The position numbers and the translations under genes were made by a program. A DNA stretch of 64,000 nt from Paragordius varius (lineage: Eukaryota; Animalia; Nematomorpha): contig OZ176057.1 in the NCBI GenBank assembly GCA_964247055.1, forward strand, positions 3,472,001 to 3,536,000, in the 5' to 3' direction. Below are positions 1,521 through 50,489 of the stretch, piece after piece. Positions within the stretch are counted from its first letter, which is position 1. The number at the start of each line of letters is the position of its first letter. The notes below the pieces were generated by a model. That model ran no database searches, had not been told where the DNA came from, and was given only the letters and a program-made list of their open reading frames with translations.

Positions 1521-3444
1521 AAGATTTTTTATACGCCCCGATTTTGTAAACTCGGTATATTCCAATTTTAAATTATATGACCAAGTGCATTTCATCTGTT
1601 CCTATTTTGCGATAAACCATGTTAAACAAGATTTTTATTATTGTCTGTAACTTTTACTATATTTATAGATCTTTATCTAAATATTAGGTAAAATTTTGTT
1701 TGATTTTTATAAACTATGTATTTGATTCTATAAACACAAAAAAATATCCTGATAATATATATTCGTATGAAAAAGCATAGCATGATAATCATGGTGAGCT
1801 TTGGGGCTTATGAGTAAGTTCAGAAATATTTTCACTCTTGTAAATGCTCCATAGTAAAAAATGGCAAAGTTAACTATTTAAAATATTTTTTGGTCGAGGC
1901 TAACCATTCCACATATGAAACCTAAAAAAGCGAAAAATCATTTATTTCATCTATCAAATTTTAGGCCATTTGTAATGAATTAATTTTAATAAACAATCCG
2001 AAGTTTCGAATAATCTTCCAATAGATACTAGTTTATGAGAAAGACTTTTTTTTAAAAGAATACCATACTTAAATTTTGTTTTATTTTATTTAAGCGTACT
2101 CCCCGCTATTTTTATGCATGTTGGAAACGGCATAATAACGGTTTAAAATGTTACAAAAACAGTTTGACTATATTATCGATGATGCTTAGTCTTTTTACAA
2201 CCTCAAAATTTTGATTAAAAGCTCAGTTTGCTTTCAAATTTAAATATTTTTTGTAAAGCGCAATTCCTATTTAACTATAAATGAAGACAAACAAATTTTT
2301 GAAAAGGCTAAATATGGTCAGCATCAACCATTTTTAAAGAGAAAGAGTTTTTTTATAATATTTAAAGCGTAATCATACCGATATTACCACATTCGAAGAA
2401 ACAGCATGAATTCCGTACGATTTAACAAAATTTTACCAATTTAATATTTGATAAAAGTATGCATTTTTTTAAAAGATATATATATATTCATTACTGCCAA
2501 TTATATATTAAATTGTGATAATCACCAAAAAATTTGTCAGACCCAATAAAATATTTTTTTGTTTCAAGGACCGTGTGACACCAATCACTATCAAAGTGAT
2601 TAACGCAAATTCTATTCTAAATGGAAAAACCGAGAATTTTGCGGGTGCATATAAATCGTAAATGCTTTTTGCGCCATTTTTTAGAATGAATAAAAAAATC
2701 AATAATAACATACTTTAACAAACCAATGGACATATTTAAATAATATTTACCAATCGTTTATTTTAACGAGCAAGCCTGGATATTTGAGTACACTTAATTA
2801 TGTTTACATATTTATTGTTGGTCTCCATCTTGCTAAAACTGAATAAATTTTTATGCTGTGCGATTTACTTTAATTTCCCTCAAATTGCGTTATTGTAAAC
2901 GATTAACAACAAAAAATTGCACATGTTTAAAATACGGAATTAAAAATAAAATTTTACAGCAACGGGTAAAAAATTAAAAACCTTAAAAGCTGTAAATTAT
3001 TTATAATCCGAAAAATTAAAAAATACCCAAATTAGTTTATTTATACTATTTATATATTGATCCAATCTAAAAATTTAAAAACAGAGCTATAAAAAGAGCT
3101 TTTAAGACCGCATAAGTAAACTGAACTAGCATATATATCTCAAGGGTGTTATTCAACACCTCAAGTTGTTGAACACTTATAGTTTATCCTTAATTTTTTT
3201 TAAAAATTATTTAACCATAATTTGTTGCAAATAACTTTCCAAAATTACACGTTAGCCAAATCCATAAAGACCATCAGAATCCTGATACTTATATATAATT
3301 ACATATATATTATGATCCAAATATTTTTATAACCACCGATTTCGTGTACAGTTTCTTATATAACAGTCAAAGGTATTTATTTTTAATAATTACAATATAT
3401 ATATATATAGGAAGGGTATCGATATTTCCGGTTAAAGAATAGGT

Positions 3445-3539
3445 TTAACACCGACAACTTACACATCTTCCATACCTCAATACTTGGCACGCAGGGCGAC
3501 AAAATTGACATTGGCCAGGACCGACCGGAGGCCTTAGAC
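3445..3539 (-). CDS. Terminal exon A3, 6-Cys peptide (G)LRPPVGPGQCQFCRPACQVLRYGRCVSCRC*
   Basis: Acceptor tttcttag|GT; 95 nt = 2+31 codons; TAA directly after Cys6; AATAAA on the - strand at 3381-3376. Confidence 0.8.
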
Positions 3540-6500
3540 CTAAGAAACATAAAAAATAAAAGAATACTTAAAAAAAGTTTTTGTAATAAACGCAGAAATA
3601 CGCGGAAAAACAGAAAATCTTAATGATTTATATCCTACTATCGCTTTTAGATTGTATACAATTAAAGATGTATCCAGTATTAGTAGTAAGTTTACATTGC
3701 CATATTTTATTAATTCCCAGGTGAGTATTGGGAAAAGACATTTATTGCTTTTTACTATTATAAGCCAAAAATATCAACCTTTGTTATCTGGCAATATATA
3801 ATGTAAAAATAGCAATGTATACTCCTATACTAGCTCATACTGTAATTTATATGTTTGTCCCTTCAGCCCTTCTATATAAATTGGGGTCGTTTGATACCCC
3901 AGACATGTCAAATAATTCAAAAAATATGGAATGAATCAAAGCAATGGCAAAAATTTGCTCTTTTATAGCATTAAGTAACCGTAATATAACAAAAGATCCG
4001 TTTAAATTACTTGATAATACTTATTACACAAGGTAATTTAGTCATGACCTGCATTAGCCATATTTAAAATAATACAAAATAAACCTTCACATTCTATCAG
4101 TGTTAGATGTGATTTAAACAAAAAATTAGCTTAATTTTAGCTTTAAAATTAAATAAAAAGGATATTAGAAAAAATGTTGTTAAATAAAATGGCGTCGAAC
4201 TAGTTTGATATGAAACTTTTTTTCAAAACCAAATTTTATTTAGTTATTTCGTTTAATTATATAATTTTTATTAGGATAAAAGCATAAAGTTAAATTGAAA
4301 CCGTTTCTTTCAGCAACTTTATAAATAATAGAAACTTAAATATACCAATTTAAATCGTAGTGTTAAAAATAAAAAATTTTGTAACTAAACTCCTTATCAT
4401 ATATTAATAATTATTTCCAGTTGAAATTAAATTTATTCAGACAAAATGTAAAGAAATACAAAAAAATATTTTTTTTAAAATACAATTACTTTATTAAACC
4501 CTATTTTTTAACAATAACAATTTTATTTGAATTTTAAATATAGAAATTTTTGGGTTAACCAATTCACATCTATTTTTATACTTTGCAGTCTAGCAACTAA
4601 TCATAATCATCAAGTTTAAAAAAAATAATTTTCTTTAAAACAAAATATTTGTCTATATGTATTTATATGTTTTATTTGTTATATAATAATTTTGCTTGTT
4701 TTTTACCGCTGAGGATGATATAATTTTTTATAACAATATATATACGGATTATTCGTATTTTTATTGGAATTTCAATTTTACACAATTTTATAAAATTAAT
4801 TTTATATTTATAATTTGAGTATATTATTAAATTCATGATATATAAAATAATTATAAGCGTATAATTACAATTAAATCCACAGACGCGACACCCAAATCTC
4901 CATTCTTGACACCAATTGGGACATCTAGCTGGGGGACAACCTCCACCTGGTCCACCGCCCCCTTGGTTACCTGGAAAATGTTTAATTTTACAAGGTTATT
5001 TATTTAACGTTAATTAAAATATGGAAAAAAAAGGTGCCAATTATAAACTATTGTCCAAAATTAACCATAACTTTTGCTTATTAAACTTTTTGACTATTTT
5101 ATCATAAACAAATTTAACGATTTTTACACTTAATGAGACTTTTTCCTACTTTTGTGTCTACGATGACATATAGGTGCAGTTTTATGAATCACCCCATAGC
5201 AAAAACCTGTAAAGAAACACTTTATAATTTAATTATCAAACATTGTTTGAAATAAAATGGCTTATATTTTTCTAAGGTTTGTGTAGAGTTTTAATCAAAA
5301 TGATTGATTAAAAATCGATAGATAATTGATTTTCCCCAAAATAACATATCTTTGTGCACATTAATTTTGATCACTTGAATAATTTTTGGCCTTTTGACAA
5401 TATACTATTGTATGGTTAGAAATCAACAAATGATTAAAAATAAACAATTCCCCTATTTTACAACACTAAATTACATCTAATTCTGGAGAAAATTTGTATC
5501 ATATGCTACTTTATTTTCAAACTTTAATGAAATTTATTTTATAAAATAACTAACATCTCCAATCACAGAAAGGACATCCTCGAGGCGGGAATCTTCTGCA
5601 CCTAGGAGAACAACCTCTTAAGGGCGGACATCCAACTGTTTATATATATTTAATTATACACAGATAAAATTTGTAAAAATTAAAATTATTCAGACAAAAA
5701 ATGTAAAAATACAAAAATCGTTTTTAATCCTTTAACACATACATTGTTTTGGTTTGCGAAATGAGAAAGCAGGGATATAAATTAGCAATATATCTAATCC
5801 ATTATAAAATTTAAATTTTAAATTAAATCGTTTGTTTAGGAAAAACAAAAGTTAATTAAATATGATTGTCTTTTCTAAAAATATTTGTCATTTTAGTATT
5901 TTGAGTTTCTCCAATTTTTGCTGTAATATCTTCAAAAAGCATTTCCAACTTATTTTACAGTGTGAGTAAAAGTATTTGCTAATAACAATATCATATTCAT
6001 CAAAAAGTTTAAGAATTACCACAGAGCTCTCGTTTTTCCATTCTTTACCAAATTTTTATACCCATTTAACGAAAAAAATAAATTTTTGATAAAATAATGA
6101 CTGTATTTTAGCATTTTATAATTGTTATTTACTACCATTAATAATAATACAGGTATTGCTTCTTATGCTATCTGACATTGGCTCTTTTATATAATAACGA
6201 AAAACTAACATATATACACATAATAATGACTGTAAATGAAATATGAACAAAAAACAAGCCTTAAATTAATAATATTAATCTGTTTGAAACGGAAACAGCA
6301 TATGATTTTATTCTTATAATTGTGAAATAAGTTTTTTTGCCAATGTACATCCCTTTTTCTTGAACTGCGTTTTAAACCTGTGGTTTTGATTAGTTATAAT
6401 CAAGGTTTTAAAAATTTGGCTCTCTTTAAATGTTAGATATATTAAATTGCAAAGTATGAAATAAAGAAGTAGATTGGTAACACAATCAATCATGTATTTT

Positions 6501-6770
6501 ACAATTTTAATTAAACAATGTGGATAAAGAGTAATCAAGATTCTATGGATGGCTTTATAAACCAAAATATTTGTCATATAGTTTTTCCGTTTTGTCTTTA
6601 TATTTATTCAATTTACATTTAAAATATAAAAAACATTCACCTCCTCCCTGCCAATTTTGTGCACTAACGGAAGAACTTAAATTATTAACCGAAATGTCCA
6701 ACAAAATCACCAATAAAACCATGGAAATAAGGGGCCAAGAATGCTGGCGTTTTGCTAACATTGTGGACAT
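3445..6770 (-). CDS. Cys-rich peptide locus A: one signal exon plus 3-4 alternative terminal exons
   Basis: Exon 1 6770/6761..6641 encodes M(STM)LAKRQHSWPLISMVLLVILLDISVNNLSSSVSAQNWQGG+G, donor G|GTGAAT, phase 1. Downstream phase-1 acceptors each open a Cys-rich frame: 5635..5550, 4970.., 3539..3445, and possibly 5206..5130. Confidence 0.85.
4672..4970 (-). CDS. Terminal exon A2, 6-Cys peptide (G)NQGGGGPGGGCPPARCPNWCQEWRFGCRVCGFNC followed by a long AT-rich read-through tail
   Basis: Acceptor ttttccag|GT at 4970; clear paralog of B2 (12912..12788); Cys6 at 4869-4867; first in-frame stop only at 4674-4672. Confidence 0.75.
5130..5206 (-). CDS. Candidate extra terminal exon, 2-Cys cationic peptide (G)FCYGVIHKTAPICHRRHKSRKKSH*
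   Basis: Acceptor tttctttacag|GT, phase 1, 77 nt = 2+25 codons; no counterpart found in locus B. Confidence 0.4.
5550..5635 (-). CDS. Terminal exon A1, 6-Cys peptide (V)GCPPLRGCSPRCRRFPPRGCPFCDWRC*
   Basis: Acceptor aaacag|TT; 86 nt = 2+28 codons; TAG after Cys6; AATAAA on the - strand at 5538-5533 and 5515-5510; paralog of B1. Confidence 0.85.
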
Positions 6771-7139
6771 CGACGTGATTGAAAGAAACTGATATGTTTT
6801 GGGATAGGATAATTTTATAAAATAAAGTTAAAATTTAAAATGATGATGAATAATTCTTAATAAATATATTATTATATTTAATTCAATTTGATAAATGAAA
6901 GGTAATAATACCTTAAAGCAATCATAATTGTGTGATTATCTATGTTGCACATAGAGGGCACGTATTTGCAGCCAAATTTTAAAAAAGTTTAAAAATATGT
7001 TATTTTTCATGTTTCCAAAATTTTAAATATCTTTATAATAACCATATAGTTGATGAATTGAATGTATAACAACGTTTCTTTATTCTTTGAAAATATTAAA
7101 GTTTGAAAATATGTGCCTATAAAAACTTAAAATAATTAT

Positions 7140-7880
7140 ATACACTTTGTGCAAAAAATTTTTTATTATGTTATAGCCTATGACCAGCGTATTCATTTGC
7201 CCCAAAATTTTTATTTGTTGACAACCTTGTTTTTGAAATATTGAGAAAAATTGAAATCAAGAAAAAAGTGAAAATTAAGGATAATTAAGAATAATTTAAA
7301 AAATAATGATAAAATATGAGATATTATGGTTTATTATCATTAAAATATATATTTTCTAGATAAAAATAGCCTAAAATCATATAGTTACGATTTCTATAAT
7401 TTCAGCTCAAAAGAGGCGTTTTTCTTGAAAAAGACTAATTATCAAACTATATTATAATAATTTTTTTTATTATTTACTATCTCACTATTAAAATCTTAAC
7501 ATTCATATTTTAATCAGTAAAAAAACATATATATCAAAATAAAACTAAAAAATATTGTTAATTTACTTGATTTTTGTGTTAAAAGAAAAACACCATCTTT
7601 GAACTGAGATTATATAGAAACCCTATTTGTATGATTTTAAGCTCTTATTTATATATATATCTATATATCTCCTTAAATGTTTAATATCTCTTTTACATTA
7701 TTTTTTGAATTTTATTTATCCTTAATTTCACTTTTTGCCCGATTTAGAAATTCTCTTAATATTTCAACAACTAGGTCGTCAACAAATTAAATCTTTGCGG
7801 CAAATGATTCACAGGTCATAGGCTATCTCATAAAAAAATTTTGTTAAAAAAATTAACCCTCTTTTTTGGACACTGTATAT
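7140..7880. mobile_element. Tc1/mariner-like palindromic MITE upstream of locus A; partial copy at about 16020-16460 upstream of locus B
   Basis: Right end ..CTTTTTTGGACACTG|TA; long imperfect inverted repeats. Confidence 0.55.
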
Positions 7881-8347
7881 ATATAAGATATTTTAAAATT
7901 TTTTTATCTGCCTTTCAAAAGACGATTACCGTCACAGTTACAGTAATAAAACCCTAAGACCAATTTTTGCTATTTTCTAAAATATATAACTATCATATTC
8001 TTGCGCAATGTTTCCATTTTATTTGTAAATTATTTATAATCATTCTTGGCGTTTTCTTCAGATAAATTCGACAGGCTATGGTTTTTGACTCTGCTATGAA
8101 AATTTTAATTAGTTTGATTGCACTATGCAAAATAATACATATTTGGTGATTTCCATTTATGATTGCGAGTTTCTTAACGACCTCAACAAATATAAAAGAA
8201 AAATAATAGGTTATTCGAAATAACACTTAGAAATTTTGTTGATAACATCTATCAGAATATTTCGATTTTGAGAGATTAACAAAAATTAATCTACATTTTT
8301 TTATAAATTTCTATAACATATTCTGATTCATAAATTTACAAAAGATA

Positions 8348-9420
8348 CTATCTGGCCCTGTCACGCGCTGTGACGATAATTATTCTTTTGCAAAAAATAG
8401 AGCTATTGGAGATAAAAAAATAATAAAAAACATATAAAAAATGTCTTTAATTAATTTTTTACAGGTTTTTGAATAGGCTCAAATATTGTTTAATTGAATT
8501 TGACCATATTTAAACTGTCCCTTATTAAAGTTAATATACAACTATCATTGGATTTACTTTAAAATTTTTGTTTTACGAAAACATGGTTAAAACTTTATTT
8601 TTGAAAGCATGTTCAGACAGCTGGGATCAAGGGATATAAAAAGTAAATTATTTATGGTCCATTTTAGGAAACATTGATATAATACTAATTCCCCAGAAAT
8701 GTGTTTAACACTGGTATCACTTCTTAGGTTTTTTGAAAATTAGCTCCAAAATCACGCCATTATTGAATGGCGTTTCAGTTTTAAACCGGTAGACCCCTAC
8801 ACCGATATACCTATGTGGAAAAGCACTGAGTTAATTTTTTTCCCTTTATAAGGCAAATATTTGGAATCATCTTTGATACCATCATGGGTTATTGGAAAAA
8901 ATGCCCACTAAATAATCGTTATATGATGTCGAATTTTTAGGGCATAAAGGCCCCAAATTAACGGCTAATAAAATAAGCCCGACCTTGATTTTATCTAGTT
9001 ACAGGTAATATTTCAAGCTTTTAATGATCTCATATGGCCATATCTGTAAACTAGCTCCAAAACAACGCAATTTCTATATAGTGGCCCAGTTTTAGCGGCT
9101 ATCGGTTTACTCAGCAGCCAATTTTAAAAAAGCGCAAGACTAAAATTTTTGCCTTTTTACAGGGAATACCTGGAATCTTCCTTAGATTTTAACGGTTTCA
9201 TACCCTGAGAAAATATTATATAGTTTATTTTTGAAAAAATGGCATTTTACAAAAAGAGAGCCTAAATTGAAAAGTAAGCCGACTATGTTCGGCGCAATCG
9301 AAAACAAGTAAAAAAATCATATTTGAAAACGACCAACTCGTATTCCGGAAATTGTCTCAAAAACACGATGTTTGTGGACTTGTGTTGAAAAACCCCGTTT
9401 TTACACAGGGTGGGCCCGAT
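8348..9420 (-). mobile_element. Helitron copy (truncated) with adjoining hAT-MITE sequence from about 8153
   Basis: Collinear similarity to 48235-49440. Confidence 0.7.
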
Positions 9421-9949
9421 GTACGAATTAATTAATTAATTAAACCATTAACATTGATCGGAAAAAATAATATTTGTAATTAACATTCAACAATCTAATT
9501 ATGATTTTTTAGAAATTTCAAAACTAAAATATGATGAATAATATATTGTGACTGAACATTTGACACAATAAAACAAAAAATAATTTTTATATTTCGCATC
9601 AGCGCTAGCAATATATATATATATATATATATATTGCAAAAATTGAAATTTTACGGATGAAACGTAAAAATATAACGACAAATATTTTTTTAAATTAATG
9701 ATAATTTTTAAATCTGGATTTATAAATAAAATTTATTGCGTAAAATGGCAAAGTGTATGTGTTGTAGAGTTATATATATCTTAGTAACACAATCAATTCT
9801 ATATTATTATAAATGTAATAAAATAGCTTATATAGGAAAAATTTAGGTTAAAACGAGTATGATTGATTTTTAGAAAAATATATGTTTTTTTAATTTTTTA
9901 CGTTTCGTCCTTATTCAGTTTCTCTCTCTATTATATATTTAGCAGGTGA

Positions 9950-11220
9950 TGTTTAATCATGAGAAACACTCAATAAAACACTATTCGATGATTCGCTTCT
10001 TACTTCGACAGCCCGGACCTTTTACTAGTCTGCATTTTCATGGCAGGCTGTTAATGAATAGTCAGAAGAATGTGATCTCTCTGCACCGACATTACAATGA
10101 TTTGTTGGGGAATAATAAAACGACCCAGGATAACGTTATCGATAATCACTCTAGGTATTAAATTTTTACGAAACTAAAAATGTCCAGGGCCAGACCACAG
10201 CACGGCGGATCTCAAGAAAAAGAAGATCGACTGGTGCACCGACAACGTCTTGCCTGTCATCAATAGTTGTTAAGAGCGTGGCACACTGATGGACAAATGA
10301 ATGGAAGAGGTAATTAATATCGCAAAGCAGGACAATCCAGGTACCCCTAATGATTACAGGGGTATAGCCCTGGTGAACACAGTGTACAAAGTATTGGTCA
10401 ACATCGCCCTGTCTAGACTGCAGTCCTTTGATGATAAACTTCATCATGCAATCTGTGGTTTTAGGCGGGGCAGGGAAACGATGGATTTATTCTTTTCTTT
10501 GGTAATATTCATCGGCACGCGCCACAAACACCCGCTCTGCTAAGGCTTTGTGGACATGGCCAAGGCTTTTGATAAGCTGGATAGGAAGCACGTGTTTGTT
10601 GAAGAGGGATGACATGGAGGAAAATTTAAGAACTTTATACTTCACTTGATAATTTGAACACGTAGTCGGGTGGCAGTTAAAACGACCCGTTGGGACTACA
10701 TCTATTCGGAACGAAGTCTGAAGCAAGGATGCCCTCTGTCCCAAAAACTCTCAACTTGGCTTCGGACTTAATAATACGAAAGTTACATGCGAGTTTTCAC
10801 AACGTCTTTTTCCAGGTGCTCTGCTACGCAGACGACCTTTGCATCTTGACGGATACGTAATAAACCAAGGACAGGCCCTTGACCAGCTGGAATCTGAACT
10901 GACGCCTATTGGTTTTATTAATAATCATGATAAGTCAAAGGTGATGATAATAGGTCGGTCTGATATGAGGATGTTTAACACTGCTGGAGGGGATTTTGAG
11001 GTTGTGGAGTCCTTTAGATGTCTAGGGGTTATGGTGAACAAAAACGGATGCTCCATTAACTCACGTCAACTCAGATTGCATTCCGCAAAGCTCATCTTTA
11101 AGGGTTTACACTGTTTATGGCGCTGGTTGGCCAAAAGAAGTTAAAAATTAAAGTCTAATCCTTACTAGGATTCTATATGGCTTGTCAGTGTAGCCATATC
11201 AAGCATACCCGCAAGTCTCA
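9950..11220 (+). mobile_element. Truncated, frameshifted non-LTR (RTE-like) reverse transcriptase remnant
   Basis: Fragments DYRGIALVNTVYKVL, CGFRRGRETMDL, VDMAKAFDKLDR, KQGCPLSP, LCYADDL, KSKVM and EVVESFRCLG are spread over several frames. Boundaries are approximate. Confidence 0.9.
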
Positions 11221-12161
11221 GGTTCAAATTTTAAATTTTATATGTTGGTTCGAACCCAGTTTTCTTCCAAAATGGGCTCTCTTAAAATAACCGTGAAATG
11301 CTGGGATTGCGAAAAAATTTAGATATATGCGAAATTTTTATATCAAAATAATATTTTTTAACACTTTTTTTCAATCTAATTTTTAGCAAAATTTTATAGA
11401 AGCGTACTAGTATTAGTTTGAGTCAAGATGGAAACGGCTTAAAAAACGCTTTAAGATATTACAAAAACTTTTTTCTATATAATTCGATATTGCTTGACAT
11501 TCATATCTCTTCAGAATTTAAAAAGGTTGAGTTGTTTGAAAATATTGGTCAATTTTCGTTAAAAATAAAATTTGAGGACGAAAAAAAGTTGAAATGTCCA
11601 GCATCATCAATTTTATAGAAAAAGTTATAATATCTTAAAGCGTTTTTAAAACGTTTCCATCAGGACTTAAAATTGTATACGCAACAAAATTTTAGTAAAA
11701 TAAATTTTTAAAAAATTTAGCTGATAATTTAGCTTATATTATATTTTTTATTGTGCAATCCCAGTTACGTTTATTGTAAGAAAACTAGCCCATTTTTGAG
11801 GAGTATAAAATTTGGGACTTTCGTTAAAAAAAATTGTTTTGTTATTTATATATAGTATTTGACATATTTTAGTATTTTTTGGAAAAACACCTGTAGCTAT
11901 ATAAAAATGTGCGCAAATTTTGCCATTTTCTAATATGGAGCACTTACCACAAAAGTGACAATATTTCTTAAATCATTTGTATTGACCGAAAGCATTATAT
12001 CTATCAATATATATATAATGTATATATATATCATCAGTTTATTCTTTTAACCCCCGATTTTGGAAGCAATGTAATTATAAAGCAAATGTATTTATTTTAA
12101 ATTGTATTATAATTAAAAGGGTATTAATGTTGTTCAAGTCATCTCAACTCAAATGATTAAC

Positions 12162-12271
12162 TCAACAGCGAGGCGAACAAAATGGACATCTCCCAGGCCT
12201 AATGATTCGACACCAGTGAGGACAAAAAAGGGGCGGGCAACCGCCTGGTCCTCCCGGACCTCCCCCACCAC
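12162..12271 (-). CDS. Terminal exon B3, (G)GGGGPGGPGGCPPLFCPHWCRIIRPGRCPFCSPRC*
   Basis: Acceptor ttttttag|GT; 110 nt = 2+36 codons; TGA after Cys6; AATAAA on the - strand at 12096-12091. Confidence 0.85.
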
Positions 12272-15200
12272 CTAAAAAATAAGACATTTGTTTAATATAT
12301 AACTATTTTTTAAAAAACAGATGTTTGAAAAACGATAAATAAACGGAGAAATATTGAAAGATATGATTGCATTCAATTTTTACATAGTAATTTATGAGTA
12401 ATCATGCTTGAAATATTAAATTTACTTAAAATATACAGTTAAAAATAAAATATTTGATATAACTCGATTACAGTAATGAACACTATTATAGGCCATATCT
12501 GTATCTATAGCTAAGGAGGTCTTTGATTTACATGTCTATTGCCAATATGATTTTTCATTTAATAAGTTTTTATATTTGATTGAACAGGGTATTATTTGTT
12601 CATAATTTCCAAATTTAAAAAATGTAATTTTATGACTATTGACATGTAAAATAAATATCCTTCATACAGATATGGCCTATAAAATTTCCTGACTACTATG
12701 TATTAAAAATATAAAGTTAAATTGCAAAAAAAATTATGTAAATCTCTTATTATATAAAAGTTATATATAATAATAATTTTAATTATATTATTGATATGGT
12801 ATAATTTTACATCCAGGTCTACAGACGCGACACCCAAAACGCTGATCTTGACACCAATGAGGACAGAAAACGGGACCACACCCTCCTCCTGGCCCCCCAC
12901 CACCGTGGTTACCTGCAAAATATTTATTTTGTTAAATTTTATTCCTATTACCATAAAAAAATAAGGCATAAAAATACTAAGATTATAGCTATATATTCCA
13001 TTCCAACATTTTAAATCTAAATTTTTTAATATAAAACCATCCTACACTTCAGGTCCTATTTAGCAACATCGAACATTGTGAAAATAATGGTTGGTTTATG
13101 GAATTCAATAAGTAAGACTTTGACTTTTAAATTACATAAATTATTTTAATATATATTTATCTCCGCCTTACCTTTTCAAATTTATTGTAATTTTTATTAT
13201 AAATAATTAAACTAACTAACATCTGTGATCACAGAAAGGACAGCCTCCGCGATGTGGAAATCTTCTGCACCAAGGAGAACAACCCCATAGGGGCCGACAT
13301 CCACCTATTTAAATATTTATTTATAAATTCTTTAGAACATGAAATTTGTACAGTAAAAATTAAAATTATGCCAAAAAATGTAAAAATGTTACAAACATAT
13401 ATTCTAACTCATCATTTTTGTTTGAAATGGGAATCAATATTGTAAATTGGTAATATACTCACTTATATAATTTAAAATTGTTAAATACTATGTTTGGGAA
13501 AACCAAAAGTGTTAATAATATGGAATGGTTTTATTTTTAGAAAATTTTTATGTTTTGTCTGTTAGTATATCAATTTTTACTGTGATGTGACAATATGAGT
13601 AAGTATACATTGCTAGAAAGTTATTATTGCCAAAAAGCATATGCAACAAAGGGCAGTCTTATTGGGTTATATTTATTTTTTTCACTTTTTACTATTATTA
13701 GCCATTATTAACTCGCTTTGCTGCATATACTATTGCAATAATTAATAACTTTTTAACATATATATTTACATACTGTATATTCAAAATCTGTTTCAAAAAT
13801 GTTTTACAGTATGAGTAAGTAAACTTTGGCTTATGCCAGTTTTTTATTAATTTTTACCAGATACAATAAACTAGAGAGAGTTATTGACTTATAGTTAATA
13901 TTTTTGCTTATTATTGCTATTAGCCAATATTAATGTTCTTTTCTGCTTGCCATCTCTGGCTATACAATATACCAGTCAATCGAAACCATTTCCAATCAAA
14001 TTTTCTCAGTCGATAAAAACTGTTTTATTTTTGAAGATAAATATCAAAATAGGAGATAATAACTTTTAATCATTAAAAGCACCCTAATAAGTATATTATT
14101 TTTTATATGAATGACATTTTTTTCTATTATATGTTAATGCATAATCATTAATAATTTATTCTTTTTTATATTTGCTACCTGGATGAGTATTTTATGGTTT
14201 TTATGATATTTATATAAAAAATATTTTTTTTTATATAGTTTTTCATTTACCAATTGAGATCGATGTTTTGCATTAATATTTGGGGTTAACCTAAAAATTT
14301 CTAGTTTCGGATAAAATAATAATATTCAAAAATACCATTTAAATTTCAAATTATTCATTTAACACTTCAAGTATTTACCCATTTCTAATTTATCGATAAA
14401 AATATCGTCGAAACGCATAATCTAACCAATATTATTTTTTTATGAAAAAGGTTTTTAAAATTTTGTAAAATAAATACATTTTCAATTGTTTGAAAATCAA
14501 TTAATCGTTAAATTCTTGAGATTAATATGGAATATTTTTTAAATTTTTATTATTTTATTCAAAACTAGAAATAATTTTGGGTTAGCCCAAATATTAATAT
14601 GAACCCTCGTTCTTAATTGTTGAATAAAATATTAAAGTTTTTTTGTATAATCAGTTAATAATATCTAAATAAAGAATAAGTTGTTAATGATTGTGTTTTG
14701 TCATATAATAACGAAAAATTGTCAATCAATTGTTTTCATATAAATAATATCCTATTTATATGCTCATAATGGTTAAAGGTTATTTTTATATCTTGTTTTG
14801 ATATCTATCATCACAAATAAAACAGTTTTTTATTGACTGGGAAAACGTTTCTATTGACTGGGAAATGATATGTTTAGTGAGAAACTATCAATGTATATTT
14901 ATTATACTGTAAATATCGGTAAAACCGCGATATTTGCATATTTTCAAAAAGCTCATTTTTAGTCGGTATTATATATGCACGGATCTGAAGACACGAAAAT
15001 ATATTTTAGCCCCCCAGCTGCTGTAAACGGAATATAAAATAAAAACAAAACATAAAAACTAAAAGACTGATGATATTATCCTTTTTGAAAAGAAACAATA
15101 TTTATTATTCTAATTATTTGGAATAGTTAAAATTTATACTCTTTTCCTTATTGTTCAGATTTTCAAAATATGGCTCGTCAAAAAACAAACAAAAATATTA

Positions 15201-15626
15201 GTCTTTGTTCATGGATGTCTAACACAAATGGCTTCGCGGGCCGCATTTAAAAATATTGGCACAAATTATATTATCTTTTGTTAGTATTAAAGCACATTGA
15301 ATGTAAAAAATGGCAAAAAGTATATGTCTTCTATTTATCTCAATAATATTTGCTGGCTGATTTATTCCATTCCAAGAACTTTAAAGAAATAAATTATAAA
15401 AATAATAATTTTCAATTTGTAATTTTTTAATTTTTCAACATGCATATGTTGCACACCCATGTTTAACTGTATATAAATATCAAAAACATTCACCTCCTCC
15501 ATGCAACTCCTGTGCACTAACGGAATTTAAATTAATCACCGAAATGTCCAGTAAAATTACCAATAAAACAATGGAAAAAAGGGGCCATGAATAATGAAAT
15601 ATGTTTTGCTGGCGTTTCGATAACAT
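12162..15626 (-). CDS. Cys-rich peptide locus B (tandem paralog of A): one signal exon plus 3 alternative terminal exons
   Basis: Exon 1 15626..15494 encodes MLSKRQQNIFHYSWPLFSIVLLVILLDISVINLNSVSAQELHGG+G, donor G|GTGAAT (133 nt = 44 codons+1). Terminal exons at 13304..13216, 12912..12788 and 12271..12162. Confidence 0.85.
12788..12912 (-). CDS. Terminal exon B2, (G)NHGGGGPGGGCGPVFCPHWCQDQRFGCRVCRPGCKIIPYQ*
   Basis: Acceptor ttttgcag|GT; 125 nt = 2+41 codons. The ORF-track hit 12703..12969 is the wrong frame of this exon. Confidence 0.85.
13216..13304 (-). CDS. Terminal exon B1, (G)GCRPLWGCSPWCRRFPHRGGCPFCDHRC*
   Basis: Acceptor aaatag|GT; 89 nt = 2+29 codons; AATAAA on the - strand at 13198-13193 and 13186-13181. 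Confidence 0.85.
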
Positions 15627-16540
15627 TGTGTAGAAACAGAATTGAGGTGGAAAAGGAAATAGTTTTGGGTAGATTTAGAAAAAAAAGATAAATTTTTGAT
15701 TCCTTATTCCTTATAAAATTATATTTTACTATTTATATTTTAATCAATTTAATAAATGAAAGGTAATTATACCTTAAAGCAGGCATAATAGTGTGATTAT
15801 CTATGTTGCACACAGAGGGCACATATTTAAAGCCAAATTTTATATACAGTTAAAAATTAGTTATTTTTTATGTATCCAAAATTTTTATGATTTATAATTA
15901 ACCTTAGGTTAGTTGATGAATTTAATATATATAACAAGCACATTTAATTTAATGCATTCTTTTAAAAATTTATTAAAGTTTATAAGCATCTTCCTATAAA
16001 AACTAAAAATATAAATTATATATATCTGTGTGCAAAATAGAGGGTATATTTTTAACAAAAAATATTATTTCCATGAGATAGCTTATAGACAGCGTTTTCA
16101 TTTGCCGAAAAAATTTTTGTTCAAAATCTTTTTTTGAAATAGAGAGATCCAAATCGACCAAAAATTGAAAATAAAAGATAATTAAGGTTAATTTAAAGAT
16201 TGATGATAAAATTTAAGATTTTATGGTTTTTTTAGGATATATTTTCAAATAAATAGCCTAAAATTATATAGTTAGGGTTTTAATAAAATTTCAGCTTAAA
16301 AGATGGCGTTTTTTTATTTCACACTTAAAAGACAAATTCTAATGAAACTATAAAATAATTTATTTACTGCCTTAACTCACTATTAAAATCTTAACATTCA
16401 TATTTTATTCAGTAAAAAAACTTATATATCAAAATAAAACCAAAATATTGTTTTTTATCTTTGCACTTTTTTGTCATCTGGTTTATGAGGGTATTTTTAT
16501 ACTGTTTTATTTTGGAATCTTACATAAGTGGTAATTATTA

Positions 16541-16709
16541 AGTATATAGTTTATGCAAAATATGATTTAAAAGTAGTGGATTATCAACCAACAATCCTTA
16601 CTAATATCTACGAAAATGTTAATTTGTCTTAAATCTTACAGCGATTTGTAAGGATTGTTGGTTGAAATTCCACTATTTTTAATCCTATTTTGCATAAATT
16701 ATATACTTA
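16541..16709. repeat. Short foldback with about 60-bp arms between loci B and C
   Basis: aagtatatagtttatgcaaaata..caacaatccttac is inverted as gtaaggattgttggttg..ttttgcataaattatatactt. Confidence 0.75.
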
Positions 16710-16735
16710 ATACCCACTCATAATCATGCCCTACT

Positions 16736-16766
<31 letters not shown>

Positions 16767-17832
16767 TAAGATATGTGCTTTCTTGTCACCTAACTTATCA
16801 TATAAAGAAATTTTATTTCTGTAACATTGAATGGCTTTTTTCGAATAATTTTGGCCTGTCGTTTGGAAATTACACTTCAATAAGGGTCGAACAAATGAGC
16901 TGTACACCTTTTGATCGTGACAAAAACAAAAAAATCCAATACTTTCATAATTATATTATGGGTTATTTAGGGTTTATCTAGCAATTCTAGACATACGATT
17001 TACCAAAGTAACCCATTATATATATATATAATATATTTATACTTTAATACGGTATTTGATACAATATTATGCATTAAATTTTTATCCGTGAAATAATATC
17101 AACCTAAAATTACTGATCATATTTAAAATAAAACTGAAAATACCAAGTAGCACAGAACAAAGTAGTTTGGTGCTGCTTGTTAGCACTTTCATATATCACT
17201 TTTTTAAAATTTAATTTTCAGTTTATATCAATATTTCTTGGTTTGAAATTTGATACAATCTTACAATATTATTTAACTATTGCTCTATTACCTATTTATT
17301 TGCAAAGTTTAAGCCATTTGATTCATATGTAAAATTTTTATAACGTTATATCTAAAAGAGCTGACACTCCTATTAATTTAAAAAATCCTTATATGCAATT
17401 ACAAAAACATACGAAAATAATAAGTATGGGATTGTATAAATAAATATGGGAAAGGAATTACAAAATTATTGCCAATTTGATAGTGAATTTAATTAAATAG
17501 ATTGATACATAACAAAATTTATCTTAGCGCTTTCCCTATTTGTCTTTAAACTCAATAGAATAAAATATTTATTACCAAAAAACTATTATCTCATAAGAGG
17601 TTTTTTTCCATAAAATTATTACAATTTATTATTGATATTGTATTTGATGGAATTGGCCCGAAATAAGAGAGAATTAATACTTATCGCATGATTCTAATTA
17701 TACATTAAATAAACTAATTAACTTTCAACAAGGTGAATGATAAATATATATTAAAATATCAATATAATTTTTGGTGATAGAACAATTTATAATTATTTTA
17801 TCAAATTTTCAAATCACAAATTTGAAATAATA

Positions 17833-18110
17833 ATGTATACTCTAATATTTTTTGTAATATTGAGTGTTAGCCACATAAGTCAATCCCAATCACAAAGTGC
17901 ACCAAGATCGGCCAGTAAATTATTGTTTATATATCCATTTCAAATAATTTTATTTTGCTCATATAAAGTCAAAATTGTAATATATATTTATATATTTTAT
18001 CCAATTTAGATAGTCCTCTGTGCCCTACATTGTTGTGTCCACCCCGTTGTATAAAGAACCCACCCCGTGGATGCTCATTTTGCATACCGAATTGTAAATT
18101 TTTTTTGTAG
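17833..18110 (+). CDS. Cys-rich peptide locus C, proximal isoform: MYTLIFFVILSVSHISQSQSQSAPRSA-NSPLCPTLLCPPRCIKNPPRGCSFCIPNCKFFL*
   Basis: Exon 1 17833..17914 (27 codons+1, donor A|GTAAAT); 95-nt intron; exon 2 18010..18110 (tttag|AT); same C-x4-C-x3-C-xn-C-x2-C-x3-C spacing as loci A and B. Confidence 0.8.
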
Positions 18111-19430
18111 TTTTACAGTAAACATTGACATTGATATACAAACAAAACGTAAAATCTAAAAGACAACCACCATGCTTTAGGTAAACCCTGATATTTCCAA
18201 CACAAACTATCTAACATTTCATTTTAATTTTGAAATATATAATTGAGTGTTACCTATCCATTTACACACCCATACCTTTATTGCGTATTTTTTAAGCCAT
18301 AATTTGAAAAAAATCAATGCTTAATAAAGTATGGTTGTCTTTAAAATAATAAATATTTGTGTAATTTATTTTTACGTTTCGTCCGTATAATTTTAATTTA
18401 GTGTATAAAAATTTAGGATTAATTTTGTTTACAAAGGGTATGTTAAAAGTAACACTTTTGGCCTTAATTTAATTTATTTTATTGGAAAAAAGATTTTAAC
18501 TAAACTTTGCGATAATCAGGGTTAGATGCCGTCTAAAAAAATTTTATTGCGAATACTCATTGACAGGGTTGAATTTTAATAGATTTTGTAATTAAATTTT
18601 ACAATATTTCCCATATTTATCAGTTTAACTTTAGAACCTTTACGGTAATTTTTTTATTCCTTATTCTTCCGTGTAATTCTCAAAGAAATATAGTTTATTC
18701 AGTTAATATTGAAAATATATAGAAAAAATGTAAAAATCAAAAATGTTTTTTATAAAAAGACAAATCTATTTTTTTGTAACATGATTATTTTATATAACTT
18801 ATTATTTTGGGTTGCGAAATAAAAAAAATAGCAATGTAAATTAGTAACAAATTATATTATTAAATATTCCACACATATAAATAAAGATAAGGAAACATCA
18901 AACTTAAAAAAAGTTGCCTTTGCAAAAAATATTTATTTATTCTAAACATTATTTTAACAAATTTTTGTGCAGAATTAAAATCAACCTAAGCCAGAGAGAC
19001 ATTTGCCGTTAAGTTTTACTAAAAACGTTATTAAAAAAATTTTTGAGACTCACACATCCATCCATTATCATAAAATTAACAAATATAAAATGGGTCGTAA
19101 AATGTAGATTAACGAACACTTAACTTAGTGCCGGGTAGTAACTCTATTTGGCTAAAATATTCAAGCAAAAAATAAATGATTTTATTTATAATTGGGGATC
19201 TCTTGCTAAGCTTTTAAATAGACTCATATAACCGGAATAACTCACATATAAATAACCCTGCTTTAAAACATTAAAAATTTAAAATTTACGGGCAACAAGT
19301 AAAAAAAAAAATATTATTTTTCAAAAAAAGACTATCATAATTTTTTAAACCTTAATTATCATATAAATTATATAAGTAAAATTGTATTGAATATTTTACC
19401 AATTACGTGTCAATTATTTACTCAGTTTAA

Positions 19431-20012
19431 CACTTCGATTCAAATTGGGGTATCTTTTTAAGCCATACTAAATTTAAATTAATTTTTTTAAAAAACTATT
19501 GAAGGAAACGGTCCCAATTTAAATTTATGCTTCTATCCTGATAAATATTATATAAATATGCGAAAATATCTTGATAAAATTTTGTTTTGAAAAAATAGTT
19601 CTACCTCAAACTACTTCGCCGCCATTTTTATTTTACAAAAATTTTGCAAAATATCGTCTTCATTTAATTTTAAGGGTAAAACTAAAGCATATTTTTTATA
19701 TAAATTACATCTAACATTGATAGAAATAGAAAAAGCGGTTTATTTTGTATTATTTTTTAATTTTACAATTTGACACATGTCAAGTTGACTGAATTTTTAC
19801 CTTTCAGTTTTAGCTCAAAATAAGTAATATCAAGTATTCTTGAATAAATTTTTTTATATATTTCGGTTTATTAATGTTATATAAGTGCAAAATTTTGCCA
19901 TGGTTTCGATTGCTTCCATACTTTTTAAACTATTTGATTTTAAACAGGCCTGGGATATCCAACTACCCCAATTTGAATCGAAGGACTAAAATGAGTGTGT
20001 TGTATTCAAGTG
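19431..20012. mobile_element. piggyBac-like MITE (TTAA-flanked, asymmetric termini); family copies at about 3870-4362, 22337-22876, 51160-51730, 56899-57999, 56969-57531 and 58200-58765
   Basis: Ends are TTAA|CACT-TCGATTCAAATTGGGGTA and TTAA|CACT-(~27-nt spacer)-TCGATTCAAATTGGGGTA. Confidence 0.8.
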
Positions 20013-20795
20013 TTAAAACAATAATTATATTTGAATTAAGATTTAAAAAGAATGGTTGTCTTTCAGGAAAAAAAAATTGTATTTATATTTTTACGTTTTG
20101 AGTCTAATTTCAGTTTTTACTGCACTTTCATTCACACTTTCTTTCTTTTTTGAGTTTTATGGTGTAAAAAGATTTCTTAAGTGGTAGCATATCCTTACTT
20201 TAAGGATTATAAAACATTTCACTGTAGCCATTCAAACGGCTCTTCTTCTAAAAATTTTAAGTTTGCTTGTGTTAAAAAAAACTTACAAAAATTTAGGATA
20301 TTAAAAAGTGTATTTAGAACCTGCAAGATGCCCAAAAATGCTTAAATTTTAGTAGACATAACATCTGATTCGCATGCCCTATATGAGTTTTAATATATTG
20401 ATCCTTATCTATTCAAATTCTATAGCATGAAAAAACATTTTAAAGCCTCTTATTTTTTTTATGGAATAGAAATAATTGGTAACACAGATCATTTCTTTTT
20501 TCACAATTGTATTCATTAAAGTTTTACAAGAAAAAACTAAGATCAAAGACTGTTCTTTGCATTATAGAATCACTATACTTTTGGTTTTTAAACGAATACT
20601 AGGTCCTAACAAGCCCTAGGAAATTATAACTGAAATTGACTCCTAAAACATTGGAACCGACCGAGAGGGTTTATAAACCGGGGTCGGAACCGCTAAAATC
20701 CTATAAAAACATTTTTCATGCTTTTTCACCTAATAGTTTCAATTTCGCTTAACTGTATTAGTCAGCCCTTTAACAAAAATGCATATTTTTATCAG

Positions 20796-20962
20796 GTCCC
20801 GGGACCGGAGGGGGCGGAATCGGAGGTGGAGGCGGCGTAAGAGGACGCTATTGCGGAGGTCCTGGAAGACCGTCAGGGTGTCCGATTCTAACGTGTGAAA
20901 AGCATTGTCAATCTCAAACTTGCGGGGAACGATGTTACAAATGTAAAACTGGCTGCAGATAA
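20796..20962 (+). CDS. Gly-rich 8-Cys terminal exon (S/G)PGTGGGGIGGGGGVRGRYCGGPGRPSGCPILTCEKHCQSQTCGERCYKCKTGCR*; likely distal alternative exon of locus C
   Basis: Acceptor ttttatcag|GT, phase 1; 167 nt = 2+55 codons; AATAAA at 21152. The upstream exon assignment (17914 or a local ATG at 20718) is uncertain. Confidence 0.75.
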
Positions 20963-21645: not shown

Positions 21646-24600
21646 ATGAACACTCAATATTCTCGACGATTCAAGGATAAAAATTATTCTTTTAGAATCT
21701 TTTACGTATTTTTTGGAGTCGTTATACACTGCTTAGATTCGATTGGAGCTCAATGTATGACTTTATTTTATATATGCATAAAAATTTTGGTTGAAATGCA
21801 TTTTATTTTTAATATAATTCAAAATTCAATCAATTAATTTATTTTAAAAATGTTTTTTTTAGTAATCTTATGATATTGTTAGCTTGTGAAAACACTCAGT
21901 TTCGATCATTCGATGGAAGTTGCAATAATGCTGAAAATAGCCAATGGGGACAAGCAAATACTCAACATTTAAGGTTTTTACCCGCAAATTATGCCGATGG
22001 TATGCACATTTCATAATATTATATATATATAGCAATTAAAATTATATTTATACGGCAAAAAAAATACAACCCATACTTTTTAGATGTGGATTATTTTGAA
22101 CGACTGATTGTTTCAAAATGCAAAGTACATAATAGAGATGCTAATTGGTTAAACAATCAATTATGTGTTTTACAATTCATTAAATGATGATTATAAGATA
22201 AATTAATATTTAAAAATTTATGTTTTGTCTTGTGGATAAAATTTGGTCTTTATATTTTTACGTTTTATCTCTATATGTTCTTTTTAAATATCGACATATT
22301 TTATTATTATCGCTATTTTATCGTAAAAGTGATTAAACTTGGATACATCACACTCATTTTAGTCCTTCGATTCAAATTGGGGTAGTTGGATAAGCCTATT
22401 AAAAATTAAAATACTTTAATAAGTATGGAAGGAATCGAAACCATGGCAAAATTTTGCACTTAAATAACATTAATAAACAGAAATATGTTAAAATTTTATT
22501 CAAAAATATTTGATATTACTTACTTTAAGCTGAAACCGAAAGGTAAAAATTTCCATGTGTGAAATTATAAAATCAAAAAATAATATAAAATAAACAGCTC
22601 TTTCTAATTCTATCAATGTTAGATGTAATTTAATTAATAAATTAGCTTTAATTTTAACTTTAATATTAAATGAAGACGATATTTTGCAAAAATTTTGTAA
22701 AATAAAAATGGCGTCGAAGTAGTTTGACATGGACCTTTTTTTTTCAAAACAAAATTTTATTAAGATATTTTCGCATATTTATATAATTTTTATTAGGATA
22801 GAAGCATAAATTTAAATTGGAACCGTTTCCTTCAGTAGTTTTTTAAAAATTTAAATCCCCAATTTGAATCGAAGTGTTAATATGTCGAAGCCATATGCCA
22901 TTTTTTCATTATTGTCTTTGTTGGCTATAAATTAAATAAATGTTAAGCAAAACTATGACATCATTTACCATTAGGAATATCAGCTATCAGAACTTCAAAA
23001 GTGGATGGGGAGCCTTTACCAAATGTTAGGGAAATTAGTTCCGCTATTATGGGAAATGGTGAGGACAGAGAAGATGACAATAGGAATATACTGTGTATGC
23101 TTTGGGGACAATTCATTGATCATGATATGACTAAAACGCCCATCTCTATAAGTTAATATTTATACATATTATTAAGAAATAAGACATGGGTTAGAAGTAT
23201 GCAAGAGGTTGATATTCTTAAATGATTTACTCTATAAATTTTCTTAAAGGACATAGTCGAAATAATTTTATTTCATATGCAATTTGGCGTTCGCATTCGT
23301 TTTTTTTAAGCTGGAATGCCAATCCATATTTTATGGCTATGACTGCGGAATATATATAAAACATCTGTTTTATATATATTTAAACTGGGTATTCGACCAA
23401 GCCACGAATATTGGCCAAACTGTTCAGAGGCGTAGTCTGAATCCGGGAAGGCCCCCTCTCCTCCTCCATGCAACCCCTTGCATTTTTAAACATAATCAAA
23501 TCCAAATCGTACTCATCATAAATGGGTCATTTTTTGTATTATTTAAAATAATAACTTTAAAATTATTATTTATTTAAACCAAAATTAAAATTTTTTGAAA
23601 TCCGACGTGCATCAGCTCCCTTCCCCCCTTAACTGCGCCTCTGAAACTGTTTATTGAATGACTTTATGTCACATTATCATAAAATATATAACCGAACAAA
23701 ATTTAGCCTAAATATCGGTTTGAATTGGATCAATAATTATAATTAATGTTTATTGCAAATTAGATTGTACAATAAAATTCTATTTAGGAAAAATTTATTT
23801 TAAGGTATTTTAGTCACATGACATGAATTTGTTTGACAATTTTATAATTATCTACTTTAGGTGGTGACAGACATAAATGCATTCATAACCGGTCAGGGCC
23901 ATTTCTAACTGTTAGTCTACCTATATACGTAAAAATTTGAAGATTTTATAATGTGTAAAGGCCCGCGAAAATTTCGGAAATTGAAATTTTGCAAAATATG
24001 CCTACAAAATCTTGAAATTAATATTTCTCAAACATTTTTAAATTAATCTATATTGGCAGGAACTCTATTTACAAATGCTTATAAAATTTTAAATGCGGCC
24101 CGCCAGATTTGTACGCTCGGTTTAAGCTGTAAATTGAATTGTATTGTTGAACTAACGACTTGATCTTTAATACCGCGTAATTTACCGTAAAGTTATTAAA
24201 AGCATTTTGTTTTTTTGCAAACACTAGAATCCAATGGCGATATATTGGATTGTTGTGATAGTGATGCGTCAGATCCCTTTTGTACCAGCATAGATACTAC
24301 GAATGATGCCTTCTTTTCAAACCATAGTGTTAATTGCTTGGGATTCGCTCGATCAGAACCTATCGATAAATCTTTAGGTATATCCGGCCCGCATATTTTT
24401 GTCCAAAATACATCTTTTTTTAATAAGATAACAAACCTAAATTCAAAATTTTTTTTGATCGTTTTCTAAAGGTAGCACATTTGAACAAATCAACCAAATT
24501 TCGTCGTTCATTGACGGTTCCATGATATATGGTGTCAATAATGACCAAGCTCGAGCACTTAGATCATTTAAAAAGGGTATTTTGTTGTTTTATTGTTGTA

Positions 24601-50191: not shown

Positions 50192-50353
50192 TTAATTATA
50201 AGGCAAATCAATTTCAAGAAGATTTTCTTGTTTTTTGCATTTATTTTCACAAATTCTGTCTCCATAACAATTGTCACAACTCTTAGGTTGTCTGCACTTT
50301 GAAAGGCAATTATTTCTATCAAAACACCTCTCCATACAACTGGCAAAATCATC

Positions 50354-50393
<40 letters not shown>

Positions 50394-50489
50394 TCTTACC
50401 GACTCCGGAAAAAAATTGAGTCAACGCCATATAAGACAAATAGTTGCTAATACACTAGAAATTATGAAACAGCTGTTTTTAGTTTTTTG
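50192..50489 (-). pseudogene. 8-Cys peptide gene (D)DFASCMERCFDRNNCLSKCRQPKSCDNCYGDRICENKCKKQENLLEIDLPYN* with an apparently frameshifted signal exon
   Basis: Terminal exon 50352..50192 (tatag|AT, 2+53 codons); 47-nt (TA)n-filled intron with donor G|GTAAGA at 50399; upstream exon 50489..50400 reads QKTKNSCFIISSVLATICL.. then ..MALTQFFSGV one base out of frame. Confidence 0.65.

Follow-up and report, generated by a model that had tools for sequence, protein, structure and literature searches.

Three adjoining genes for small six-cysteine modules in an AT-rich stretch of the Paragordius varius genome, and how their exons may be joined

The AT-rich genome of Paragordius varius holds, within the 64,000-nucleotide stretch of contig OZ176057.1 analyzed here (the window), three adjoining unannotated genes, A, B and C, for small six-Cys modules, with one module per exon. 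The arrangement raises the question of how a single signal-peptide exon is connected to the several module exons lying downstream of it. The initial annotation had proposed a choice among endings, in which each signal exon is joined to a single last exon, picked from two or three alternatives, and about three genes yield eight or nine single-module peptides. We examined this proposal alongside the reading in which the module exons are spliced in series, and alongside further readings that the exon arrangement might invite.

The three signal-peptide exons, as initially annotated, were borne out: each opens with an ATG, encodes a hydrophobic core and breaks off after the first base of a codon, ahead of a GT, that is, in phase 1. 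They lie at 6641..6770 on the minus strand in gene A (43 codons plus one base; donor G/GTGAAT), at 15494..15626 on the minus strand in gene B (44 codons plus one base; donor G/GTGAAT) and at 17833..17914 on the plus strand in gene C (27 codons plus one base; donor A/GTAAAT). The minus-strand module exons of gene A comprise A1 (5550..5635), which lacks a linker and codes for a module of net charge +5, A2 (4867..4970, counted from its acceptor up to the final Cys codon), with a Gly/Pro linker ahead of the module, and A3 (3445..3539), the terminal exon, likewise with a linker and a module. Gene B, on the same strand, repeats this layout with B1 (13216..13304; no linker), B2 (12809..12912, to the last Cys codon; linker and module) and B3 (12162..12271; linker and module; terminal exon). 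Gene C, on the plus strand, has C1 (18010..18095, to the last Cys codon), an exon-1-type module without a Gly linker, and C2 (20796..20962), its terminal exon, which combines a long Gly-rich linker with an eight-Cys module and is the one exon for which an extra Cys pair had correctly been noted. A six-frame scan of positions 3445-20962 recovered exactly these eight six-Cys pieces, against a mean of 0.5 in dinucleotide shuffles; their GC content is 0.48-0.60 versus 0.10-0.27 in the flanks, and in all eight the acceptor AG leaves two leading bases, corresponding to phase 1. The three signal exons and the eight GC-rich, phase-1 six-Cys exons are real and far above chance, in agreement with the initial annotation. 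The same six-frame scan also picked up one further Cys piece, of another type, at 50192-50395.

Alignment of the eight modules, which are 27-35 residues in size, revealed six Cys and one Gly as invariant positions with the spacing C-x(2-5)-C-x3-C-x(6-8)-C-x2-C-x(1-3)-C; Pro and Arg are abundant, and the net charge per module is +2 to +6. Searches with all nine Cys pieces recovered no Pfam family, and the eight exon peptides gave a single chance-level aldolase match at E-values up to 10. PDB sequence searches with C2 and with a profile of the eight exons returned chance antibody and vicilin matches only, word-based protein searches with the signal exon of gene A and with the A2 module region returned no candidates, and scans of metagenomes, run once with the exon-2 pair and once with the exon-1 pair, yielded pattern matches with none confirmed. 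A profile search of 1.84 billion representative proteins retrieved just two long low-complexity proteins; because no relative is detectable among that collection, we regard the six-Cys module as a lineage-restricted family. An AlphaFold model of the B2 module (pLDDT 66) shows a short helix and a hairpin and found no fold match in the PDB. A CS-alpha/beta defensin, with its CxxxC helix pinned to a CxC strand, was rejected as a candidate given the lack of a Pfam or fold match and the occurrence of a CxC at the end in A3 only; a penaeidin- or hyastatin-type assignment, which would combine Pro/Gly-rich and six-Cys parts, was rejected for want of a family profile match. Rfam and tRNA scans returned nothing. 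Exact look-ups of three ORFs of the window found no recorded entry. A hAT transposase search gave best matches of about 53% identity, belonging to scorpion, moths and aphids.

Comparison of the three loci showed that they are paralogous genes, with A and B being old duplicates of the whole unit (dS 0.7-1.3) in which the exon order has been kept. Between A and B dN is below dS in every exon (dN/dS 0.24-0.40; Fisher p 0.034 in exon 1, 0.015 in exon 2, 0.016 in exon 3 and 0.001 when exons 2 and 3 are combined), showing that the exons are under purifying selection. Because the module exons are paralogues, these statistics and those of the splice pattern given below rest on about three independent lineages. 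The conservation extends to the proximal promoters: a block at 6874..6985 (minus strand) upstream of gene A, in which a GATA-type site and a near-palindrome are found and which has TATA-like letters a short way downstream, has its counterpart at 15733..15846 (minus strand) upstream of gene B, with 87% identity versus 68% over the whole upstream alignment. An immune-type promoter was rejected, as none of the three genes has a kappaB-like site upstream. A 520-bp likeness between one intron of A and one of C is a dispersed repeat rather than a feature of the genes.

The selection data bear on whether all the module exons are in use. Exon 1 of both A and B meets an immediate stop with AATAAA nearby, and one could thus suppose that only the signal exon and exon 1 are expressed in these genes, exons 2 and 3 being relics of an older, longer gene. 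We consider this most unlikely, as exons 2 and 3 have kept all their Cys, their frames, their acceptors and a dN below dS (p 0.001 combined) across a divergence of dS 0.7-1.3, and a conserved poly(A) block follows exon 3. Equally, the later module exons might belong to separate genes with unrecognized first exons or promoters. The initial annotation had reported no signal exon hidden in the gaps between B1, B2 and B3, and a scan of 2.5-22 kb for an ATG with a hydrophobic core and a phase-1 donor indeed returned the three known exons only. The scan is heuristic, and it could overlook a leader exon of very small size or unusual make-up. Separate genes are nonetheless highly unlikely: the gaps within B measure 300-600 nt and hold no such combination of ATG, hydrophobic core and phase-1 donor, and the promoter-level conserved block is found before the signal exons only. 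One candidate, a 9-codon ATG piece before B3, was rejected as a hidden first exon, being too short and having no counterpart in A.

We then consider how the exons end. The statement that each module exon has its own stop codon fails as worded: a stop directly follows the last Cys only in A1, B1, A3 and B3, and lies one residue further on in C2, four in C1 and six in B2, while the frame of A2 stays open for 64 AT-rich codons and would bring in a seventh Cys. In A2, B2 and C1 the GC content drops from about 0.5 to 0.10-0.15 as soon as the last Cys is passed, a composition resembling that of introns. Beyond the last Cys, A2 and B2 share about 12 similar bases and have a length difference that is no multiple of three; conservation of the flanks 3' of exon 2 between A and B ends after this donor-like dozen bases, which could instead be the remnant of a short coding tail. 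The presence of a nearby AATAAA, claimed for most of the exons, is largely uninformative, given a frequency of 3.2 copies of the hexamer per kb on each strand, and none is found within 600 nt of B2. The claim retains its force in two places. One is exon 1 of A and B, with two copies each (5533-5538 and 5510-5515 for A1, 13193-13198 and 13181-13186 for B1, all on the minus strand). The other is exon 3 of the same genes, where the hexamer lies at +63 in A3 and +65 in B3. The gene A copy (3376..3381, minus strand) sits within a block conserved between A and B and has a conserved G/T-rich stretch after it, and the gene B copy (12091..12096, minus strand) is its retained equivalent; it is only at exon 3 that a poly(A) region with an AATAAA block is clearly conserved between the two genes.

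A choice among alternative last exons can draw on the phase compatibility of all eight acceptors with the three signal exons, the lack of any other first exon in the gaps, the stops right after the last Cys in A1, B1, A3 and B3 (and within 4-6 codons in B2 and C1), and the AATAAA close to A1 and B1. It has to contend with the 64 stop-free codons of A2 and the seventh Cys gained there, the lack of an AATAAA within 600 nt of B2, the restriction of an own stop combined with a poly(A) signal to exons 1 and 3 of A and B, and the loss of conservation past exon 2 beyond the donor-like dozen bases. It also leaves unexplained why every later exon begins with GT and why only later exons have linkers. 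Thus, the shared signal exon stands, and exon 1 of A and B may plausibly serve as an ending, but all eight exons serving as endings fits the sequence poorly, and we judge that proposal distinctly unlikely.

The features left unexplained by alternative endings are those expected if A, B and C are ordinary genes of three to four exons for secreted cationic proteins of two to three modules, with the exons joined in the order signal-1-2-3 in A and B and signal-1-2 in C. This is the best explanation we can offer, and one that we favor slightly. The donor of each non-final module exon would sit inside its last Cys codon; in five of five such exons this codon is TGT running into donor-like letters, namely T/GTTAGT in A1 and B1, T/GTAATT in A2, T/GTAAAA in B2 and T/GTAAAT in C1. 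In quality these match the donors of the signal exons and those of a peroxidase gene in the same window, one of which is GTTTAT. Since all five following exons begin with GT, splicing would rebuild the split Cys, the GT completing the junction codon. Such a start is far from a given: GGT accounts for only 25% of the Gly codons in the module exons, and only 6.9% of the window's pyrimidine-tract AGs have a GT after them. Counted from the acceptor up to and including the T of the split codon, A1, A2, B1, B2 and C1 measure 81, 102, 84, 102 and 84 nt, all multiples of three, and each exon would thus have the same phase at both ends. Linkers are present on all five exons that would follow a module and on none of the three that follow a signal exon, suggesting that the Gly/Pro stretch of each later exon becomes a spacer between modules. 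Certain points weigh against splicing in series: the searches brought up no transcript, protein or orthologue, the T of GTTAGT is the less common base for donor position +3, TGT is in any case the usual Cys codon (33 of 41), and a stop after the Cys by itself already yields the letters GTT. Terminal use might also apply to B2 and C1, because both reach a stop within 4-6 codons. The three genes likely give rise to about three to five products, as opposed to the eight or nine initially envisaged.

Serial splicing leaves room for one optional ending. Exon 1 of A and B could be skipped or could serve as a composite terminal exon, and we see the arguments for and against such optional use as evenly balanced. 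The conserved letters there are TGTTAGTTA, and in both copies the two AATAAA fall within 35 nt. The acceptor of exon 1 is weak, having a pyrimidine fraction of 0.39 versus 0.44-0.83 in the other acceptors. If exon 1 were left unspliced, its donor letters would be read as an immediate stop with an AATAAA close behind, giving a one-module peptide beside the longer protein. This would amount to a compact competition between splicing and polyadenylation that decides the coding outcome while leaving an intact disulfide module either way. A broader version would have every non-final module exon in dual use, its donor overlapping the last Cys codon (and also the stop codon in the case of exon 1), such that the message either ends there or continues with the module whole; coupled with the skipping of phase-1 exons, a single signal exon would then feed a combinatorial set of one-, two- and three-module peptides. 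We regard this extension as possible but doubtful.

The window therefore contains at least four genes for secreted Cys-rich peptides that were missed by ORF-based tracks. Since head-to-tail splicing of the exons is the most likely arrangement, we interpret them as an orphan peptide family rather than a new machine for generating peptide libraries. Judged from composition only (signal peptide, charge, and Pro and Arg content), defence-like or secretion-product peptides are the likeliest function, and the six-Cys family is worth annotating and seeking in secretions, for example venom, saliva, haemolymph or symbiotic organs. Should the exons indeed be chained, the gene structure is an ordinary one, and the locus offers a caution, namely that in very AT-rich genomes every exon seems to own a stop codon.

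Serially joined module exons would recall the EGF-type architecture of modular extracellular proteins, in which each Cys-rich module is encoded by a symmetric phase-1 exon. Common to the two would be a single disulfide module in each exon, phase 1 on either side of it, exon duplication and a leading signal exon, whereas the present modules are much smaller (27-35 residues), have another Cys spacing and no Pfam match, and would have their junction inside the last Cys codon. The BCR peptides of aphids, too, are secreted orphans that have six or eight Cys and conserved signal peptides, and three BCR genes cluster inside 20 kb of an AT-rich insect genome; these are single-module peptides, and as the published Cys spacings of all listed subfamilies differ from that of the present module, a BCR identity was rejected. 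In the PDB search the solved BCR4 chain gave no sequence match to the modules. As cited in PMC1761135, Gmachl & Kreil (1995) described genes for apamin and the MCD peptide of bee venom that share one 3' exon; these too are small disulfide peptides in tandem units sharing an exon, although the shared exon is the last one there and would be the first one here. Insect serpin genes, despite coding for a large enzyme-inhibitor scaffold without sequence kinship to the modules, offer a precedent for a duplicated-exon array coding alternative C-terminal parts of a secreted insect protein, with exon use documented by transcripts (PMC12758981). Finally, the composite and skipped terminal exons distinguished in work on intronic polyadenylation (PMC10227441, PMC8559711) provide the terms for what may take place at exon 1 of A and B. 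As in a composite terminal exon, there is a donor, a stop that is read when the donor goes unused and an AATAAA just behind it; the difference is that here either predicted route would give a complete module as its coding outcome.

Both strands were read together with a six-frame scan, and the three signal-peptide exons and eight small cysteine exons of the initial annotation were recovered in three neighboring, unannotated genes, A and B on the reverse strand and C on the forward strand. The small exons, numbered in order after the signal exon (A1-A3, B1-B3 and C1-C2), each encode a module with six cysteines, C2 being extended to eight; the six cysteines and the glycine preceding the fourth are invariant in the alignment. 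As proposed, every signal exon ends in phase 1, with a GT after the first base of its final codon, and every cysteine exon is preceded by an AG and opens with the two bases left of a codon. The exons are GC-rich (0.48-0.60 versus 0.10-0.27 in their surroundings), and nine cysteine-dense pieces occur in the window, where 40 dinucleotide shuffles yield 0.5 on average. A heuristic scan likewise found no further first exons in the gaps. We conclude that the cysteine exons are real. The accompanying claims that each has its own stop and that most have a nearby AATAAA are weaker than originally worded: A2 is stop-free for 64 codons, while B2 and C1 reach stops 6 and 4 AT-rich codons on; with a background of 3.2 AATAAA per kb on each strand, a "nearby" signal is in most cases uninformative.

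Genes A and B arose by duplication of a single unit in which the signal exon and the three module exons keep their order; it extends from ~0.9 kb 5' of the ATG to ~150 nt past exon 3. Their synonymous divergence is 0.3-1.3 and dN/dS is 0.24-0.40 in every exon, with dN significantly below dS in exon 1 (p = 0.034), exon 2 (p = 0.015), exon 3 (p = 0.016) and exons 2 and 3 combined (p = 0.001). This indicates that selection has retained all the module exons; chance ORFs are thereby ruled out, and dead relics are unlikely. Directly 5' of a TATA-like element, a 114-column block (A 6874-6985, B 15733-15846; reverse strand) is 87% identical versus 68% over the entire upstream alignment, and contains a GATA-type site and a near-palindrome with two six-base arms. 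Conservation in this block exceeds that of the coding exons. No comparable conserved block precedes the later exons of A and B, and no kappaB-like site was found upstream of A, B or C or near the block; a TCAGT-type initiator precedes one gene in the window. Signal exon A is followed, 24 nt past its accepted donor, by another in-frame phase-1 site with donor-like letters (T|GTAAAT; 6617, reverse strand), for which B has no counterpart.

The initial annotation treated the eight modules as alternative last exons, each spliced from the signal exon of its own locus; several features instead suggest that they are joined head to tail within one message. Each of the five non-final exons has TGT, common for cysteine regardless (33/41), as its last cysteine codon, and after the first T of that codon come letters resembling a donor (T|GTTAGT for A1 and B1, GTAATT for A2, GTAAAA for B2, GTAAAT for C1). 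For comparison, GTGAAT (twice) and GTAAAT are the accepted donors of the signal exons, and GTATAT, GTTTAT and GTAAAA those of a peroxidase gene in the same window. The exon that would follow opens with GT in all five cases, so that T+GT re-forms the invariant cysteine at the junction, whereas only 6.9% of pyrimidine-tract AGs are followed by GT. As the exons are paralogous, these counts represent about three independent lineages. Splicing from the signal exon would make the junction codon glycine, and GGT accounts for only a quarter of the glycine codons in these exons. GC content drops sharply immediately 3' of the last cysteine in A2, B2 and C1. Past this point A2 and B2 have about a dozen bases in common, and their length difference is not a multiple of three; no more than one of the two can thus use a coding tail. 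Gly/Pro linkers occur on all exons that would follow a module and on none that follow a signal exon, a rule that also holds in the diverged locus C. Finally, an aligned AATAAA is clearly kept between A and B only in the exon 3 flank (+63/+65), with a conserved G/T-rich block behind it. In combination, the donors, GT starts, GC drop, A2/B2 tails, linkers and exon 3 AATAAA point to serial gene models: A and B would be four-exon genes encoding three-module proteins, and C would have three exons and encode a two-module protein.

The idea of alternative last exons might survive in reduced form at exon 1 of A and B. In A1 and B1 the letters across the last cysteine codon and the stop are identical; the stop is TAG, the rarer choice, and with the T behind it makes a hexamer as donor-like as a stop allows. 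Both exons have two AATAAA within 35 nt (~0.1 expected), and their acceptors are the weakest of the set. This anatomy may represent a composite or skipped terminal exon, a candidate optional ending. The architecture predicted from these sequence features is most likely an ordinary one, and exon 1 may provide an optional ending.

The predicted products have signal peptides with plausible cleavage sites, leaving a predicted N-terminal glutamine in A and B, and their modules, abundant in proline, arginine and glycine, have net charges of +2 to +6. One module, modeled with AlphaFold at moderate confidence (pLDDT 66), shows a short helix and a hairpin, and no fold match to the model was found in the PDB. 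We tentatively infer secreted defence-like or secretion-product peptides, the weakest part of this account.

The window is strongly AT-rich (23-36% GC per 2 kb) and has no tRNA or Rfam matches. Its composition, the TCAGT-type initiator and the relatives of a transposase that it carries are arthropod-like, and nothing in it resembles human DNA. Outside the three genes it includes an animal haem peroxidase gene (exons within 24215-33728, forward strand), between whose exons lies an opposite-strand hAT transposase ORF of 443 codons (28758-30089; closest relatives ~53% identical). A fourth secreted cysteine-rich gene, of another type and without a Pfam match, combines a signal exon of 18 codons with a phase-1 end (52578-52524, reverse strand; donor G|GTATAT) and, 2.2 kb downstream, a phase-1 exon (50352-50192, reverse strand) that encodes eight cysteines paired as CxxxC/CxxC and closes with a real stop; a (TA)n run directly precedes the acceptor of this second exon. 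A dispersed repeat of ~520-600 bp (3862-4344, 19425-20018, 22333-22880, 51154-51715, 56963-57537, 57532-58003 and 58195-58765; copies 72-87% identical) sits in the pre-A3 and C1-C2 introns and elsewhere, which accounts for the similarity between introns of A and C. A motif of ~50-60 nt (5665-5760, 13335-13420, 4405-4515, 18300-18405, 18690-18765, 20030-20135 and 46598-46702), probably the end of a small mobile element, recurs in the introns of all three genes, including 40-90 nt upstream of the A1 and B1 acceptors, with one copy outside the genes. A second repeat family of 0.8-1.3 kb has copies 70-81% identical (8153-9419, 40355-42657, 48234-49604 and 59929-60831). One of the large inverted-repeat stretches (14001-14845, 7155-7842, 11263-11802 and 16536-16712) lies within the first intron of B and explains much of its extra length relative to that of A. 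In a GC-richer stretch between A and B, a short ORF piece (10301-10543, forward strand), whose match to reverse transcriptase stays below threshold, probably represents a decayed retroelement.

Searches run exon by exon found no related Pfam family, PDB chain, representative protein or metagenome locus; the six-cysteine family is new. It resembles the aphid BCR peptides in clustering and orphan status but differs from them in cysteine spacings. Shared or alternative exons have precedents among insect secreted proteins, in the apamin/MCD pair (Gmachl & Kreil 1995, as cited in PMC1761135) and in serpins (PMC12758981). A1 and B1 share the anatomy of the composite or skipped terminal exon as these terms are used elsewhere (PMC10227441, PMC8559711), a likeness seen here at the level of sequence.
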